A DNA stretch of 63,178 nucleotides, filler included, from Lenisia limosa (lineage: Eukaryota; Protista; Breviatea), in NCBI GenBank assembly GCA_001655205.1. It is 13 parts of 13 records of this genome, joined end to end, with 100 filler letters (N's around TTAATTAATTAA, not from the genome) between each part and the next. Parts side by side here need not be neighbours in the genome. Positions count along the whole stretch, not along the records: positions 13,971 to 24,265 come from LPNZ01001683.1; 12 more parts are not named here. The stretch is one strand, 5' to 3'. Below the pieces are notes generated by a model, which saw nothing but the letters and a program-made list of their open reading frames with translations, had not been told where the DNA came from and did not search any database. This document shows positions 13,971-24,210 of this stretch, in pieces (the stretch's first letter is position 1; every line of letters begins with the position of its first letter). The position numbers and the translations under genes are program-made.

Positions 13971-16900
13971 TCCGCCTCCGAACATGCTGCTCAGGTCAGG
14001 CATACCCCCGGGTGCTCCTCCAGCGCCTAGGGGGGAGTAAAACGAAGGCAATTTCGATGAAGAATATTGACGTAAAGGTACTTATCACGAACCGAATAAT
14101 CTGAAACTCCAAACAAGCAACCAACGGATGACAAACACAAAAACAAACACAAGCCAGGTGAGATGGAATCAAAAACAACAATATCAAACTTGACCCACCC
14201 CCGCGCACCTCCAGCGCCGAAGTTAGCGAAGGGGTTCTCAGCATTTGCGTTGCTATTGGGGATTTCTTCAGGCTCTTCATCGGAGCTGTTCTGAATAGTC
14301 AGACGTGATGCCTCCGTCATAGAGCTGTTATAAATGACTCTAATAATATAACTGTTCCAACTAGTAGAGGGGAAGACTCTCATGATATATACTATGTAGC
14401 TGATTGAAAGAGAATGAAAGTGGACGACTCTCAGAAAGCAGTTTGAGTGCGAAACACCAACAGTCCCTCAAATACTCGCCTCCCTTCCCATGCCGCGAAG
14501 CCAACCATTTCCTCGACTTCGGTTTTGAAGTTGCCGGCGGTGTCGTTGCAAGGTTGTGCGGTTTCCTTCAGCTTGGCCTTGGCAGCTGAGAGTCCTTCTT
14601 GGGCAACCATGTTCGTGGGGTCACGGTCTGGATGTGTTTATTAATAATGAGAAAATATAATATAATCTAGGGTTACAAAAGAAAAATACATAGCAAGGGG
14701 GTGATAGTGGTTTGAATAATGTGCTGAAAAAGAATCAATATGATGAACTACAAGTCTTGACCGATTTTTCTGAAGGGAAATGTTATTTCACCAACATTAA
14801 CCACAGCAACTGAAGCAAAAGGACCCCCCCCCCNNNNNNNNNNNNNNNNNNNNNNNNNNNNNNNNNNNNNNNNNNNNNNNNNNNNNNNNNNNNNNNNNNN
14901 NNNNNNNNNNNNNATGTTGAAGTATGCAAGTCTGTTGTGTTAGAGTAGGCAAGTCTGGTAAAACATGCAGATATTCATACACATACTCGTTTTTAGAAAC
15001 AGTATCTGTCCTATTCTGAGAAGTGTAGAAATAGAGCACGAAAATAACTAGAAAACAAAGCAATAAAATCACCAGACAGAGAGATTGACAATGGGTACCC
15101 TCCCTCACCCCAAGCGACTGTAGGACTTGACGTAGTTGGGGTCGATCTTGATGGCGGCTTCACAGTCAGAAATTGCCTCGTTGTCTTTGGAAATGTGGGA
15201 GAGGGCGGCAGCTCTGAACGCGTGACGTATTGGTTATGGTACTAGTAGACTACATTAGAAAACAAAGTAATATGAGGAACTGCATATCATTTGTGTTATG
15301 TTATGTGTTCCATTGAGCAAAAGGCTAAAAGAACATGAGACTCAACACAAGATTCAAAACAAGCAAACCTGTTAGCATAATAAATGGCACAGTGGGGGTA
15401 CGCCTCGATAGCGAGTGTATATTCCTGAACGGCAGCCTGGTAGTCTCCAGATTGAAGGAACCCATTTCCTGATACTGTGAGCAAATACTCTGTGCATACA
15501 GTATTACATAGTAATATATAGTTGTAAGGCAAAAAGATTGGGTGAATTAATATTACACTATAATTCAATATCTCTTATAAGCGTGGGTGTTGACGGCTTC
15601 GGCCAGATACACCTTATTTTTTATTTCTCAATGCTCTTAATATAATATACACTATACTCCATACCTTATGATAACTTATATTATCATATAGCAATGATGA
15701 AGAATTGAAAAATAAAAGATAATAGTTTTGCTACTGTTGAATAAGCCATAACAATAATATGAGCTTCCAGCAGCCAGAAAACTGACACAATCAAAAGTCA
15801 CCATCTAAGAACACGATATTTTATAATTCTCCCAAACCAGATTTTTTGTGTTCGTCACCAAGAGACTTTGCGGTCATATCGTCCTTCTAAAAAAAGTCAG
15901 GAAATCTGATCTTTTTTCTCACCAGAAAACAATGGTACAATACATGTATATTTCATCATTCAGAATATTTAATAAAAGAGAGTAGTACCTGACCGAAGCC
16001 ATCCACGCTTAGAAGATATAATGCAATAATGAAAACCCCAAACCTGAACCGCAGGACCGTATTTGAGCTCAAACTTCATTTTGGCCTTGGAATAGAGGTC
16101 ATTGAAAGCTACAATTGGTAAATGATAATGTAACTCTCTGTGTACTAACTTCTTTGCCATATTTCACAATAAAACCAAGACTGAAACCATACCTGCAGAG
16201 CCGTATGGCGCAGACGCAAAGGCACCCTTGTCCTCCAGGGTCTTCAGGAATCTCTCAAAACGGGCATCCTCCTCTTCCGGGCCTTGAACGTAATGAGGAT
16301 GGAAAATTTTTGGAACAAAAAAACAGCTCTCTTGACAAAAATTTGACATGCACAAGGTTTGAAAACAAAAAAATAAATAAACAAAGCTCAGAGTAGCTCC
16401 GCAGCACCACACCTCATTACATGATACATCCATTCCTTTACCCCCTCCCCCTCCCCCTCCAACGAAGTTCAACGAATGTCTCTTCCTCCTTTTGGGGGGC
16501 TGAAGGTGCTGGAGAGCCGTCTAATTGTCAGATGGAGTCAGAATATATCATAGAAATGAGAAAACGAAGGTGTAGAACTGAGAAGAAAAAATAAGGAGTA
16601 TATGGCTGAAGAGGTCCACCATCAAGATTATACTACATAAGATGATATATAACATTAATTCAACCAATCGTTTGTCTTACAACTCCGTACATGAAGATAT
16701 TACTGGGTAGTATTCCATAAAAAGACACGCATTATCTAATTTATTATATCCTCCACCCACTAAATGATTCTTGAAACTCGACCAGCTTCTGTGAAAACTC
16801 GTCGAGAGGAACAGGGGTCTCAAATTCGGTAAAGCCAAAAGCAGCAGCAAGTGACTCTGTTGCAATCTAGGGTGGTGTGATCAAACTATGATGAAGCTCA

Positions 16901-17619: not shown

Positions 17620-19081
17620 ATGCCATTTGCCAACGCTGAAGGAAAGACCGTCCCTGACGTTAAGTTCCCCGTCATCACCAAGGAAGGTTTCAAGGTATGT
17701 TCATTCCAATGACCACGCTTTCTTTTATAGACGTGCACATTCTTCTCACCTTTTTAGGCTGTCTCTACTGATGACCTTTTCAAGGTATGCGAAAATTGAT
17801 GAGTAATCAATTCAAGGAACCTCCTGAAATTAGGTCTATGCCTTAAATGAAGACTTTAATGAATATATTCTTAAGTCCCATTGATTGTAACGTTTTCAGG
17901 GAAAGCGCGTCGTTGTCTTCTCTCTCCCCGGAGCTTTCACCCCCACTTGCTCCTCAACTCACCTTCCCCGCTACAATGAGCTCGCTGAAGTCATCAAGGT
18001 CAGCACTCTGGTGATTTTTTTCTTGGATAACAGTTCCGACTTTGGAAGGTTCTCTTCTGACCCTTCTTTAGGCCCAGAAGGTCGATGACATCATCTGCAT
18101 GTCCGTTAACGACACCTTTGTCATGAACGAGTGGCGCCGCTTCCAGGAGGCTGAGAACATCACGTAGGAGAGCGGATCTCTTCATCATTTCATCGTCTTC
18201 ATCTCGTTTGGAGCAGTTTAACCATCATATAGATTTTAACTTCATGTTTTCACACTTCACACGCGACCATGACACAATGTTAAAAATTCTTCTGTTCTTC
18301 GTTGACAACCAAGCATTCCAGTGTTAACCCCCCTTCAGCCTCATTCCCGACGGCAACTGCGAGTTCACCGAGAAGATCGGCATGATGACCGACAAGTCCG
18401 CAATCGGCTTTGGCAAGCGCTCATGGAGATATTCCATGGTTGTCAACGACAAGGTATGTGGAGCGGTGGAAACTTCTGTACATGTCTGTGCGTATGTACC
18501 TGTGTTTGATTTTTGTCATTCACGCCTCCAGGTTGTTGAGAAGATGTTCATTGAGCCCGAGGTTGAGGGCGACCCATTCGAGGTTTCCGACGCTGACACC
18601 ATGCTCAAGTACCTCAACCCCAACGCCCAGCCCCCCAAGTTCTTCACTGTCTTCTCGTAAGCATCTGATTCTTTTTCTTCTCTCTTTGAACTTTGACTTC
18701 CTTTTCTTTCTCCTTTGCTCCATTCATCATCAACAGTCGCCCCGGCTGCCCCTACTGCGCCAACACCATTGCCCTCATGAAGAGCAAGTACGTTCGGAAT
18801 CATTTACAAAAACAACATCCTTTTAAACGGCCTGCTGGGTTCCGAAAATATAATTTGACCAATTTTAGGGGCTGCAAGTACGAGGAGATCACTCTTGGCA
18901 AGGACATCACTTCCAAGTCTCTCACTGCCGTCTCCGGCGCCTCCACCACCCCCCAGGTAAGAATACTGTCCAGATGACACCCCCCCTTTTGTTTTTTAAA
19001 ATAATTTGTTCCCAGGTTTTCTACAACGGAAACCTCATTGGAGACTCTGTCAAGTTTGCTGAGTTCGCCAAGACCCTCTAA
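17620..19081 (+). CDS. PGdx: Hybrid peroxiredoxin (Prx5-type)-glutaredoxin, 9 exons
   Basis: [100 protein letters not shown], fused to Grx [31 protein letters not shown]. Confidence 0.95.
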
Positions 19082-19543
19082 GTTCTCTGTCGTCCTTGTG
19101 CCATGAAAATTATTTATGTTTCATTGAGGATTTGTGAGATTACCCCTATGACTGCCCTATGATGTGCCTATGATAAGTTCCCCCAAGTCTGTTGGTTGGT
19201 GGAGTTGGTTGCTCTGAGAGCATCGGAGAATGGAAAATGACAGAAAACTTTATATTATGATAAATGACCATCACCATTTCCCTGCGCCGGCGGGTCTAAC
19301 TTCGATTTCACTTCTTTTATACAAGAGAGGACCCGGCGGCGGATCGGGAAACAACTATAACCATCATCTAGAAGGGACCAGATAGACAATCAAAACCTGG
19401 GGGACGGGGGCCATCATGCCCTTTTAAAGGCTCAAACTCCCCGATCCCGCTCCTTTTGCTAGGAGTATTATTGTATTTATTGTATTATAGACGCTGAGAC
19501 GAAGAGGTATTCACCGCACCACTCTTCATCTCAATCTTCGACA

Positions 19544-22235
19544 ATGGCTAAGCTCTTCCTGGTAGCACTTCTTGCGCTACTAGCACCACTGTGCTCGGCT
19601 GCAGTTTTCAGGGCACCGTTTACAAGGAATCTGTCCCTTGAAATGAGAGTGGGTTACTGCACGCACATCTTCTCATTCCATTTGCACATCTACAACCACG
19701 AATAGCCAGGGTAATTTTTTTATTTTGTGTTGTGTTGTTTTGTTTATTTGTTTTGTGATTTCAAATCACAAGCCATTCGAGATGCTTTTTTTCAGATTGG
19801 ATATCCTGGTGTGACTGTGTTTGTGCTGCTTTAGACAGACATGTGAATATCTCAAACGAACCCCTAACTGCTCGACCACCGACCATAACTGACCAGGGAT
19901 ACGATGTAAAAGTCGCACGCCTCCTCCTCACGCAGCTCGGCTACCTGTCATACCCCATCTCAGACCACTACGACCACACGACGGCCACGGCGGTGGTGCA
20001 GTTCAATAGTGACTATGGCCTTGAGCAGGGTTGGATGGTTATGTCTTATATCACTTTTTGGGGCTATCATTTTCCGCAGTGATAAGATATCCACTCATGT
20101 GATAATTGACCGACAAAGTCTCAGCGATACTCTGATACATAATGGATGAAATCTTCTTTCATCATTTCGACTCGAAAGTCTGGCATAAGGTTCCCCTCTT
20201 TTTACCCCCCTCCCCAACTTACGCCAATATTCTTCCGTTGTCAATGTCGATATCTGATATCATCTAATTCTTCCCACGTTCTCGATAAATCTTATACTAC
20301 CCCTTTATTTTTGGACCATTGAGAAGCCTTACTAACATGATACAGAAGGTCTGCATGCGGCCGCGCAGTCGCTGCTCCTTGACCTTGCCCCAATCGATTC
20401 CTATATCGACGCCGGCGGACATCTTCCGAGCCCGTATAAATATAAGGTTTGCAAGGGGGGGTATGTCAGAAACAAATAAGCTTACAATTTTAAATTTTAG
20501 CTAAATTTACGTGAAAACTTAAACCCCGAGGGTGCCTCTTAGTCTCTCCAAAAACTTAGTATTCTTATTATCACTTTTCGGGTCATTTTCACACAGTCAG
20601 AGCTATTTCTGTTCATCATTTCGACTCCTATCTCACTACTACCCACTCATCTCTTCATAAACCCCCTGTCTTACTGTTGACCATGATTTTAGGTTTTGGT
20701 CACTGTTTGTGAAGATCGCACTATTCAGGTATGCTGGGGAGGCACGCAGAAAGATGTGTGCATAGATTTGTAAAGCAAATGATGGGTTGAATTACTAATA
20801 TAATCCAATATCTCCTCTAAGTATGGTGTGGATGACTTTGACCTGATACTTTAATTTCTTGTTTCTACCTACTATCATAGTATTCAACAAAATATGAGAT
20901 GCTTGGAAAAGGTCATCTACGAGTTCACAAACAAGCGCACCTCATATTTTGACAAGCCCTATATACGATGTAATATATATTTCGATAGTTCACCGCTCTT
21001 GTTCCAAAAATACAACTTTAAGCTTCTTTTTATTTTTACTACGGGTTCAAAAATAATCTGCACCTCAGATTTGGTTGAGCCGTATATAGACTGAATTTCT
21101 CGATAAATCTTCGAGAATTATCGATATTTTACCAGTATTTTTCGTACTGGAGTGAAGCCCTAATAGTATATCGATTATTAATCAGTCATTATCATGATTA
21201 GAGTGATTTCTAAATATTGGCCTAACGCAACAGCCAATTGCGAAACTGCTGAATTCCACTGGGCACGTGATCCATTCCTTCCGAGCCCGACTGAAGGGCC
21301 AGAGCGACTCCAACGGCCGCTCCATATCGGAGGNNNNNNNNNNNNNNNNNNNNNNNNNNNNNNNNNNNNNNNNNNNNNNNNNNNNNNNNNNNNNNNNNNN
21401 NNNNNNNNNNNNNNTCAACTCACTTTTTACACCTTAGTTTGGCTCTGATGGTGACACTCCCACAGGCCTCTATTTGTTTGACCTCAACTCACCCGGTACG
21501 TTTTGGTTTTATATTGTAGTCGCCCTGGACTGGCTTTGTTTGTTGTTTGTAATCATGGGCATAACGCGTTAATGGGCTTATTGGCTTCAGAAGGTGACGA
21601 CGACCTCTACGGACCCTACCCAGTCAACCGTGCGACTGATGGTATGCTCAGTTTTTATCTGAATCGATTGTGTCATCTTCGATATAATAATAAACAATGA
21701 CGCTGGCAGGTCTTGCTGGTAACGCAGCTATTGCCTATAAATCAGGCGGCCCGAGGAGCGGCATTCTCCTGCATACTGGCTCCTGGGACAAGTCCGGTTC
21801 GGATACCATGGAGGACTCTCATGGTTTGAAGGGTGGTAGTAGGAGTAGTTTGTGCGCTAAAAGAGGGACGTTTGACTTAATTATAAATTAGTGCAATAAT
21901 AAGTTCATATTTTTTTTGTTTTGTGCGCCAGTGACGGAAGTTGGTTTTCATTTCCAACGTGTTTAGGATGTATTCACGCCCACCAAGACGATATCCGCAC
22001 AATATGGAAGAAGCTTGTTGCTCTTGGTGTTGAAGTGGGGAGGGAGGCCTGATAACTTACCAAATAAAACGATTCGCTGTAAAAGAACCAGCTCCAATAG
22101 TGATTGCGATTCACCATACTGTGTTTTCTATTCTTATCCCCGCAGGTCCGAGAGAACCCCTTCGGAACTCGGCCATATCCCTTCGCACCCCAGGGCCTTT
22201 TGTCGGTGCAAAGGGGGAATTGCCACAACTTCTGA
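19544..22235 (+). CDS. Secreted protein: peptidoglycan-binding domain plus L,D-transpeptidase-like (YkuD) catalytic domain
   Basis: Signal peptide MAKLFLVALLALLAPLCSAA; PG_binding_1-like LSLEMR|GYDVKVARLLLTQLGYL..YDHTTATAVVQFNSDYGL; GDTPTGLY; ILLHTGSWDKSGSDTMEDSH|GCIH fits H-X14-SHGC. Confidence 0.82.
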
Positions 22236-22469
22236 AGCTTTATGTCTTGTCTTAATTTATATTTCTATTGATCTACCCCTCTTCAATCCATAGATTATGA
22301 ATGTTAGATTATACACTATTTGACACAAAAACAGACACCAAAGAATTTGGAGGCACTGAGCTGCCTATCGTAAGCTGTCCCAACTCGCCTCCCATCTGAC
22401 ATCAGAAAACCTTACATCTCACCGAAAACAGCGCATTTGAGCACAGCAAACCAATAGAAAAGACTACGA

Positions 22470-24210
22470 AAGAACACTATGACGATGAAACGAACGTGGC
22501 CTCGCGCCCTCTGAGCATCTCCTGGACCTCTTCCGTGCTGATGTAAAGGTCCGGGTCCTCTCCCTCCATTGTTCCAAAGGGAACTGGCTTCCAGTTGCTG
22601 AGGCCTAGAGGGATAAGGTTATAATTTTTGAGGGGCGATCAGGATTCTTAGAGCAAAATGTAATTGTGATAACTTTGGCACCGTGTGATACTAATGTCAT
22701 ACGAAAAACTCGGAAATAGATTGTTAGAGATTTCGCCTCACAAATCTATACACAGTTTTCTCCGTGCCTCCCATTAATAACGATTCACCCATCATTTGCA
22801 TTTCAACTTCGTGGACTTGTAATACTCCCATCCCACTGGTCCAGGGCGAATCAGAGGCGGCCACTTCCGCTTCCATTGACTCAATGTCGATCTAGGGCGT
22901 GAAGGCGGTTTTGAGAAGAATGGGTGTGCTAAAGAATACAGAAGAGGGTGTTATAGAAGAAAGGGGGTGATAAAGGTTAGAACGGAACTGAAAAGAACGA
23001 GGAAGAGGTTAGACAAGAATTTTGGTGTTCCAGAAAATGACAGCATCTACCAGCAAAACACGACCCCATGCCTACCGCGCTTTTGGAAGAGGGAGTCACA
23101 GATTTCGGCTTCTTTTCGAAGAGCCTGGAGAAGGCATGGAGACGCTTCCTCGGGGCCTGGGTGGCCATTTCGGGGCTGACACTCGCGTAGCATGGCATGG
23201 CCTCCAGAGTGGGGGAGGGCGTGGAGGCGGCTGCGGAGGTGTGAATAGGGCTTCACTTCGGTTCGGGAAAATATATCTATTTTCGAGGATTTATCGAGAA
23301 TTTCAGTCTTTTTTCGAACCGAAGTGAAGTCTTAGGTATGAAGGGCATTTCAATGAATATTGAGGTGAGAAGGCATGGGAAAGCATGCTTAGGCATCTTA
23401 TCCAAATCATACTAATATTATTACCTCCCAACCTGGGGGTGCGGTCAGCACAATGCTTTGTTTTTCAACAGCTTGGGACAGAAGCTTGAAGAGTGAAAAT
23501 AACAACAGAATAAAACACAAGAAAAAAGAAGAGAATTCCCATTAAATAGAATAGAAAATCAACTCCCCCCACCAGTGCCGCTTGAACTGCTGAGAGGTTC
23601 CTTGCGGGGAGCTGGGCTAACAAGTCACTGACCGTCTGGTAGCACTTTGCCGTTCTAACAGGTCAGGAAGAACACTGCAATGATTGCCTTGATCCCCAAG
23701 AAAGAAGATAATAGATTGTGGAATTACCTGAGAAATTTACAATTTGAAGTGAGGCAACATTAAATGTCTTAATTCCACCAAAAAAAACTGCACAAAGGGC
23801 CAAAACGCTCCGCCCACTGTTGGTTCAAAAAGGCCTGGCCATTTTTGAGCAAGTCTTCCAAAGCATCCGCATAACCGAGCTCGTCAAATTTCTGAAGGAA
23901 TTGTGAGCAAGACAAAATGCACAGGGGACCCATTTTGAAGAAATTGAAATGGGGTTAATGACGAAAACGAAACAAAAACTGGAACAAGTATTGATGATAA
24001 TTCTCAGAAATATATAGCTTAACACCCATTTTGATACACAAAACGAAGTAGATGAGGCGAGAAGCCCCTTCTACCCTCCACTCTTCTTCGTTACCACAAC
24101 GAACCTCAGTGTTAGTGACCTTATTGAAGTCCTGTGGCCCGGCCTTCTGTGCTTTCTCTCGCGCAATTCTTTCGCCTTTGCGGGACCTTCGGAATCAAAG
24201 AGCTTCAGCT
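22470..24210 (-). CDS. Multi-exon gene of uncertain function (weak RhoGAP-like hint)
   Basis: GC-richer exon blocks with GT-AG borders on the minus strand, e.g. VSDLLAQLPARNLSAVQAAL and GLSNWKPVPFGTMEGEDPDLYISTEEVQEML. Confidence 0.45.

Follow-up and report, generated by a model that had tools for sequence, protein, structure and literature searches.

Lenisia limosa and other eukaryotes appear to hold a eukaryote-only branch of the YkuD superfamily: a secreted, intron-bearing PG_binding_1 and L,D-transpeptidase-fold protein

Enzymes with the L,D-transpeptidase fold are regarded as peculiar to bacteria and are considered targets of carbapenems. They are known as YkuD or ErfK proteins (PF03734) and include Bacillus subtilis YkuD, LdtMt2 and Ldtfm, while YcbB (LdtD) has an architecture of PG_binding_1 plus YkuD. 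Here we describe a gene with these two domains from Lenisia limosa, located at 19544-22235 (+) of the window, by which we mean the whole 63,178-nucleotide stretch of joined parts that was analysed. It differs from the bacterial L,D-transpeptidases in being eukaryotic, with introns and a signal peptide, in belonging to a family whose motif is S-x-G-C-I-H instead of [ST]-H-G-C-h-[RN] and which adds the invariant blocks DLNSPE, GPYPVNR, GL.GNA and HTG.W, and in having a host without its own murein to cross-link. We think it probable that this nuclear gene of ten exons encodes a secreted PG_binding_1 and YkuD-fold cysteine enzyme that processes the walls of ingested or attached bacteria as an L,D-peptidase.

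Three groups of described enzymes invite comparison. The L,D-carboxypeptidases Csd6 (Helicobacter pylori), Pgp2 (Campylobacter jejuni) and Bd1075 (Bdellovibrio) align with the Lenisia protein in their catalytic domains only (Pgp2 58-203, Csd6 61-203), at 16-17% identity. The Lenisia protein has PG_binding_1 in place of the NTF2-like C-terminal or N-terminal dimerisation domain, terminates three residues past the catalytic domain and, lacking an NTF2-like domain, falls outside the Csd6/Pgp2 family. Tlde1 (Tlde1a) is an L,D-transpeptidase-like antibacterial effector of the Salmonella type VI secretion system (T6SS) (10.1101/2022.08.05.502956). The Lenisia locus, in contrast, is eukaryotic and intron-bearing, has no T6SS or immunity-gene context and uses a eukaryotic signal peptide for secretion; its product is not Tlde1, since Tlde1_dom (PF10908) gave no Pfam match at E values up to 10 in P0002, the database open reading frame (ORF) for the protein. 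Tick Dae2 and the GH25 lysozymes are eukaryotic murein hydrolases of bacterial ancestry. The NlpC/P60 enzymes of Trichomonas vaginalis share that history (PMC10461829; 10.1101/320382). Like these, the Lenisia protein is a secreted bacterial wall-enzyme fold retained by eukaryotes that meet bacteria, but the two sets are unrelated in fold and chemistry, the hydrolases just named being papain-like or glycosidases and the Lenisia protein a YkuD beta-sandwich with a Cys/His dyad. The Lenisia family is also far wider across eukaryotic supergroups, and no close prokaryotic counterpart of it was found.

The gene model rests on transcript evidence. The stretch is present in two public runs, one of DNA (X1, with 0.99 of the sampled words) and one from a poly(A) RNA library (X2), and their contigs were compared with 19300-22500; the DNA run is possibly the source of the assembly itself and hence not independent, whereas the RNA contig comes from a separate library. 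This contig (X2 record 9, 1026 nucleotides (nt)) spans 19409-22271 with nine skips, and its word depth of about 40 for the gene indicates expression. The coding sequence is 855 nt long and encodes 284 amino acids (aa). All nine introns are GT..AG (the second letter of intron 5 is N), and each is a joint in the RNA contig: 19648 to 19897, 20029 to 20346, 20446 to 20693, 20728 to 21234, 21332 to 21438, 21495 to 21591, 21641 to 21710, 21823 to 21967 and 22034 to 22146. The proposal in an earlier note, made from the DNA alone, that this is a eukaryotic gene with introns is borne out by these nine spliceosomal introns in poly(A) RNA. P0002 (251 aa, a Trinity ORF in EukProt from a separate assembly of L. 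limosa) is identical to residues 34-284.

An assembly gap interrupts the gene at 21334-21414, wholly within intron 5 (21333-21437), with the RNA joint running from 21330/21332 to 21436/21438. The ten exons between 19409 and 22271 (240+133+101+36+99+58+51+114+68+126) total exactly 1026 nt, the length of the RNA contig, and therefore no coding letters are concealed in the gap. Before it exon 5 ends in ...TCGGAG, the following G being the first donor base, and across it the mRNA reads SISE and then FGSDGDTPTG, in frame. The gap is also crossed by a DNA contig (X1 record 8, 2184 nt), which spans 21103-22500 with 23 letters fewer than the assembly, which leaves about 58 nt unread, not 81, between contiguous flanks. 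One detail of the earlier note had to be corrected, namely an exon 2 start near 19840, since the RNA joint places the true acceptor at 19897. No start at about 19835-19843 has a frame-compatible exon 1 donor, and the in-frame stretch from about 19837 (NISNEPLTARPPTITDQ), upstream of 19897, is intron.

The encoded protein begins with a hydrophobic leader, MAKLFLVALLALLAPLCSA (aa 1-19, 19544-19600), with a mean Kyte-Doolittle value of 2.85 over residues 4-17, which agrees with the signal peptide claimed earlier; it was judged by eye and hydropathy only, and family relatives also begin with hydrophobic leaders. Downstream protein searches used P0002, in which the first 33 residues are missing. 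This database entry (EP01086_Lenisia_limosa_P016103) begins at the internal Met34 without the signal peptide, and therefore a localisation prediction made on it would say non-secreted.

Behind the leader, the helical domain that had been likened to a peptidoglycan-binding module matches Pfam PG_binding_1 (PF01471; E 3e-7, 30.9 bits against a cut-off of 23), exon 2 alone matching at E 6.5e-7, and has the three-helix fold expected of it as well as a profile score above gathering. P0002 also scores 28.7 bits with YkuD (PF03734; cut-off 23.4; E 2.3e-6), in an alignment that takes in positions 36-138 of the 146 in the profile and aa 160-249 of the complete protein. Both domains thus exceed their Pfam gathering scores. 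The same two families are matched in 54 of 59 relatives, and no Pfam domain beyond them was found in P0002. Single catalytic exons gave no match against Pfam or the PDB, being too short. An AlphaFold model built on 59 relatives (predicted local distance difference test, pLDDT, 91.8; predicted template modelling score, pTM, 0.89) was compared with solved structures, and all of its top Foldseek matches in the PDB have the YkuD fold (the ErfK/YkuD beta-sandwich). The listed figures are 12.3 for Pgp2, 12.1 for Csd6, 10.8 for B. subtilis YkuD, 10.6 for Bd1075, 10.0 for Vibrio cholerae LdtA, 9.8 for Ldtfm, 9.7 for Tlde1a and about 9.5 for LdtMt2; the SleB N-domain (11.4) matches the N-terminal domain with a root-mean-square deviation of 1.2 A. 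Membership of the YkuD superfamily is thus assigned by profile and predicted fold, and the secreted two-domain architecture put forward in the earlier note is upheld by hydropathy, Pfam profiles and fold together.

TPTG stands at residues 165-168 (21456-21467). Of the catalytic motif H-x(14-17)-[S/T]-H-G-C-h-[R/N] the protein has H216-x14-S231-H232-G233-C234-I235, the H-x14-SHGC part being intact as had been read from the DNA, but it departs from the motif in having His236 at the final R/N position. The codon of Gly233 is cut G|GA by intron 8 (21824-21966, phase 1), again as described before, and the RNA joint from 21822/3 to 21966/7 unites SH with GCIH. None of H216, T217, G218, W220, S231, G233 and C234 varies among 59 sequences whose identity to the Lenisia protein is only 38-50%, and this strong conservation suggests that the active-site residues are under selection.

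Relatives of the protein were sought by a word-indexed search of 5.8 billion proteins (E <= 1e-3), which returned 159 clusters, the best of them only 49-50% identical; among the matches listed (n=119) the relatives have E values of 1e-34 to 2e-58. Those with names are eukaryotic without exception. They come from Amoebozoa (Acytostelium, Ceratiomyxa, Soliformovum and Paramoeba, which answers the question, left standing in the earlier note, of whether amoebae have homologues), choanoflagellates (Salpingoeca kvevrii, Choanoeca flexa), cnidarians (Nematostella, Actinia), ochrophytes (Rhizochromulina, Pteridomonas, Ochromonas, Ochromonadaceae) and other protists (the jakobid Andalucia, the heterolobosean Pharyngomonas and Trimastix marina). 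All named taxa are phagotrophs or cnidarians, with no fungus, land plant, arthropod or vertebrate among the named matches, and this phyletic pattern supports a bacteria-directed role.

All genomic contexts inspected are eukaryotic. The metagenomic members inspected adjoin eukaryotic genes, including those for ELMO, GRIP, a split oxidosqualene cyclase, calreticulin, MutS and a mitochondrial carrier; the Acytostelium copy is flanked by alpha-adaptin and a STAT gene, and the Actinia copy adjoins a polyketide synthase (PKS). An ESM Atlas feature search returned first two all-eukaryote clusters (134 members, most commonly Cnidaria, and 60 members, Evosea) and next bacterial PG_binding_1 plus YkuD clusters. 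The blocks that mark the clade (signal peptide, PG_binding_1, DLNSPE, GPYPVNR, R.GILLHTG.W and S.GCIH) are all present in the Lenisia protein. The only labels that members carry in databases are 'hypothetical', 'uncharacterized' and 'peptidoglycan binding-like domain-containing', and full-text literature searches, which did not cover subscription journals, found no description of eukaryotic YkuD proteins; the Lenisia papers found treat syntrophy and mitochondria. From their sequences, these proteins appear to form a eukaryote-only branch of the YkuD superfamily, intron-bearing and secreted. One family member, P0071 (438 aa, from a Joint Genome Institute (JGI) contig of 24.7 kb), is called as fused to DUF952 (PF06108), which may be a real fusion or merged calls. 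Exon 8 (37 aa), in an exhaustive search of representatives, recovered only its own products, P0001 (a read-through ORF) and P0002; three further matches were rejected as chance hits to repeat proteins.

Prokaryotes were scanned with two family signatures, MP[ND]S.GC[ILV]H[AGS] and [YF]GPYP[VI]NR[AVF], with confirmation by tblastn, and no confirmed relative was found in 185,579 prokaryotic species genomes (one per species). Viral contigs gave no relative by motif scan, and phage records no tblastn match. The best plasmid match by tblastn is an annotated L,D-transpeptidase of Paenibacillus polymyxa, 28% identical over the catalytic domain only. BLASTP against this enzyme (28% identity, E 6e-12) aligns DG.TPTG, YG.Y, R.G..H.G and [ST]HGC, and hhalign of the family profile against it gives a probability of 94%. 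The nearest bacterial look-alikes have the two-domain layout in common at about 25% identity, and a cluster from Verrucomicrobiota is among the bacterial proteins with PG_binding_1 plus YkuD. The best whole-length structural match outside the family is the AlphaFold DB cluster representative C5CGK8 (267 aa; E 1.6e-15, 25% identity, template modelling (TM) scores 0.55/0.52), which may be the closest non-family relative to share the two-domain layout.

Exon structures were mapped exactly for three members, giving nine introns in Lenisia, eight in Actinia and three in Acytostelium. Lenisia and Actinia tenebrosa share one intron at an identical column and phase, which precedes exon 4 and lies just ahead of the first catalytic-domain strand (YK[YF]K|). 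In three further pairs the introns are 1-5 nt apart; by our own rough estimate, one exact match would arise by chance about 8% of the time and four within 5 nt about 1-2%. These shared introns are suggestive, though not proof, of long residence in eukaryotes. A maximum-likelihood tree places the cnidarians together, three amoebozoans near each other and the ochrophytes together, with an unresolved backbone. Rooting on the Paenibacillus enzyme was rejected, as the outgroup branch of 10 substitutions per site attracts the long Lenisia branch; the root is therefore untrustworthy, and we infer no donor, root or event order. As judged from its sequence comparisons, the gene appears long established in eukaryotic genomes and not to be a recent transfer from an epibiont or bacterial partners.

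Lenisia feeds on bacteria and is said, after Hamann et al. in 2016, to bear Arcobacter epibionts. The most likely role of the protein, by analogy, is that of a secreted or phagosomal L,D-peptidase trimming bacterial stem peptides. The steps that follow are drawn from the established chemistry of YkuD enzymes. The PG-binding module would dock onto bacterial murein, and Cys234, activated by His216, would attack a tetrapeptide stem at the L-centre carbonyl of its third residue; a thioacyl enzyme would form as D-Ala4, or the partner in a 3-3 cross-link, departs. Water would then resolve this intermediate, since the eukaryotic phagosome or medium offers no organised acceptor, and the protein would in net effect be an L,D-carboxypeptidase or L,D-endopeptidase, like Csd6, Pgp2 and Bd1075. 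The interpretation in the earlier note is partly supported, the architecture, fold and eukaryotic nature being borne out, while hydrolysis of peptidoglycan, a part in prey digestion or symbiont management and sensitivity to carbapenems are inferred.

Several observations weigh against this role. No biochemical or localisation account was found for any family member. PG_binding_1 alone is no guarantee of murein binding in eukaryotes, and the family profile, run against PDB sequences, matched via the PG-binding domain only, because the catalytic domain has diverged too far to be detected there by sequence alone. The family motif is non-canonical, with the His of SHGC in 19 of 59 sequences and a His two residues after the Cys in 58 of 59, and these departures mean that chemistry or substrate could differ. 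The Lenisia copy is itself among the most divergent. Of 60 columns conserved to 90% or more across the other 58 sequences it retains 53, the second lowest count in the set; the loop that joins His216 to Ser231 is without a near-invariant Trp; P229E and P239Q are present; and its branch in the tree is long (1.47 against a median of 0.59).

That the Lenisia copy is decaying or neofunctionalised, with the family reaction lost, would fit its branch length, the lost Trp and the replacement of two near-invariant Pro near the catalytic loop; against this stand a reading frame intact over ten exons, expression at the RNA depth given above, and the retention of all the invariant catalytic residues. We consider such a loss improbable and read the divergence as fast evolution rather than decay because the frame is intact, the gene is expressed and those residues are all kept. 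The altered motif, S-x-G-C-I-H, bears rather on whether the family has been re-used on an endogenous substrate, such as a peptide of the extracellular matrix, a cyst wall or a glycoprotein, with PG_binding_1 serving as an interaction or pro-domain and peptidoglycan uninvolved. The restriction of the family to eukaryotes would agree with this, as would the blocks DLNSPE and GPYPVNR, invariant here and absent from bacterial relatives, and the use of the PG_binding_1 fold as a pro-domain in metazoan matrix metalloproteinases. The named members, however, are phagotrophic protists and cnidarians, which differ greatly in their walls and matrices, and the two-domain architecture is the same as that of bacterial murein enzymes, so that we regard an endogenous substrate as doubtful.

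If murein is the substrate, the protein might still be a true transpeptidase or exchange enzyme, which would exchange D-Ala4 for another D-amino acid or an amine, or couple something to murein, and so poison or label walls in the manner of the T6SS effector Tlde1. This we hold to be unlikely, though a little less so than an endogenous substrate; resolution by water is favoured because the host builds no murein, because the enzyme would meet foreign walls in the phagosome or at the cell surface and because the closest solved structures are carboxypeptidases. Recent horizontal transfer from bacteria living with Lenisia, for example the epibiont, or contamination by them, has in its favour that the YkuD fold is bacterial outside the family and that the source culture was a mixed community, the RNA library being labelled metatranscriptomic. 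It is nevertheless effectively refuted, and we give it next to no weight: the gene has spliceosomal introns throughout and poly(A) RNA, and it neighbours an ORF with a glutaredoxin domain; its best relatives are eukaryotic and at most 50% identical, while the best plasmid-borne bacterial match is as remote as described above; the family motifs found no relative in the prokaryotic genomes scanned; and one intron position and phase is common to a sea anemone.

The gene puts the L,D-transpeptidase fold in a conserved secreted family of many bacteria-eating eukaryotes and sea anemones. If its members do cut or edit murein stem peptides, they would constitute a new enzyme class in eukaryotic antibacterial digestion and immunity, beside lysozymes, PGRP amidases and the NlpC/P60 or Dae enzymes, and would open a way to study how protists deal with their prey and with the symbionts on their surface. 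A broader possibility, which we put forward tentatively and hold to be rather less than evenly balanced, is that these are ancient eukaryote-specific secreted L,D-peptidases (Amorphea, Discoba, Metamonada and stramenopiles), an unrecognised non-lysozyme, non-amidase route by which phagotrophs and cnidarians dismantle or edit stem peptides; they could control the muropeptide signals (tri- versus tetrapeptide) that the host sees, and the Lenisia copy may be tuned to Arcobacter epibionts. The family is directly testable, because members occur in laboratory-tractable organisms (Nematostella, dictyostelids and choanoflagellates).

The features of the gene, all on the + strand, are distributed over its exons as follows. 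The 5' untranslated region (19409..19543) begins with the RNA contig at 19409, and exon 1 (19544..19648, aa 1-35) encodes the signal peptide and the start of a conserved PF.R.L segment. The core of PG_binding_1 falls in exon 2 (19897..20029, aa 36-80), which is bounded by RNA joints and ends in phase 1; exon 3 (20346..20446, aa 80-113; joints 20028/9-20345/6 and 20444/6-20691/3) completes it with the third helix and continues through the linker as far as YKYK, where the catalytic domain starts. Exon 4 (20693..20728, aa 114-125), supported by the RNA contig and by translation, encodes the first YkuD strand and is followed by exon 5 (21234..21332, aa 126-158; joints 20725/8-21231/4 and 21330/2-21436/8). 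Intron 5, which is skipped by the RNA contig, has a true length of about 82 nt. Beyond it, exon 6 (21438..21495, aa 159-178) carries TPTG and the invariant DLNSPE, exon 7 (21591..21641, aa 178-195) the family signature YGPYPVNR, and exon 8 (21710..21823, aa 195-233) the catalytic His216 (21772-21774), Ser231-His232 and the first base of Gly233. Exon 9 (21967..22034, aa 233-255) supplies the remainder of Gly233, the catalytic Cys234 (21969-21971), Ile235, His236 and a helix, and exon 10 (22146..22235, aa 256-284 and the stop) the C-terminal strands of YkuD (NPFG..YP..QG), after which the 3' untranslated region (22236..22271) runs to the end of the RNA contig.

Intron 4 (20729..21233, 505 nt) contains a very high-copy repeat. 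Its DNA word depth, especially over 21012-21225, reaches 44,391 against about 36 in the flanks, and many contigs break there. Two arms within it, 21081-21118 (38 nt) and 21138-21162 (25 nt), copy in inverted orientation a palindromic element at 23246-23334, and the repeat looks like a miniature inverted-repeat transposable element (MITE).

The same piece of the window holds a second assembly gap outside the gene (14834-14913, 80 N) and a weak ORF at 15296-15565 (-) resembling a tetratricopeptide repeat (TPR) protein (TPR_2, E 0.006, below the cut-off). Upstream, the neighbouring gene at 18382-18977 (+) contains an ORF in which Pfam recognises a glutaredoxin domain (CPYC; E 1e-7), and the ORF just before that resembles by eye the C-terminal part of a Prx5-type peroxiredoxin, with no Pfam match; the two may be a Prx-Grx fusion with introns. 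Downstream, a second RNA contig (485 nt, depth 15; 22411-22500 and beyond, +) starts about 140 nt past the 3' end of the transcript and marks a closely spaced gene.

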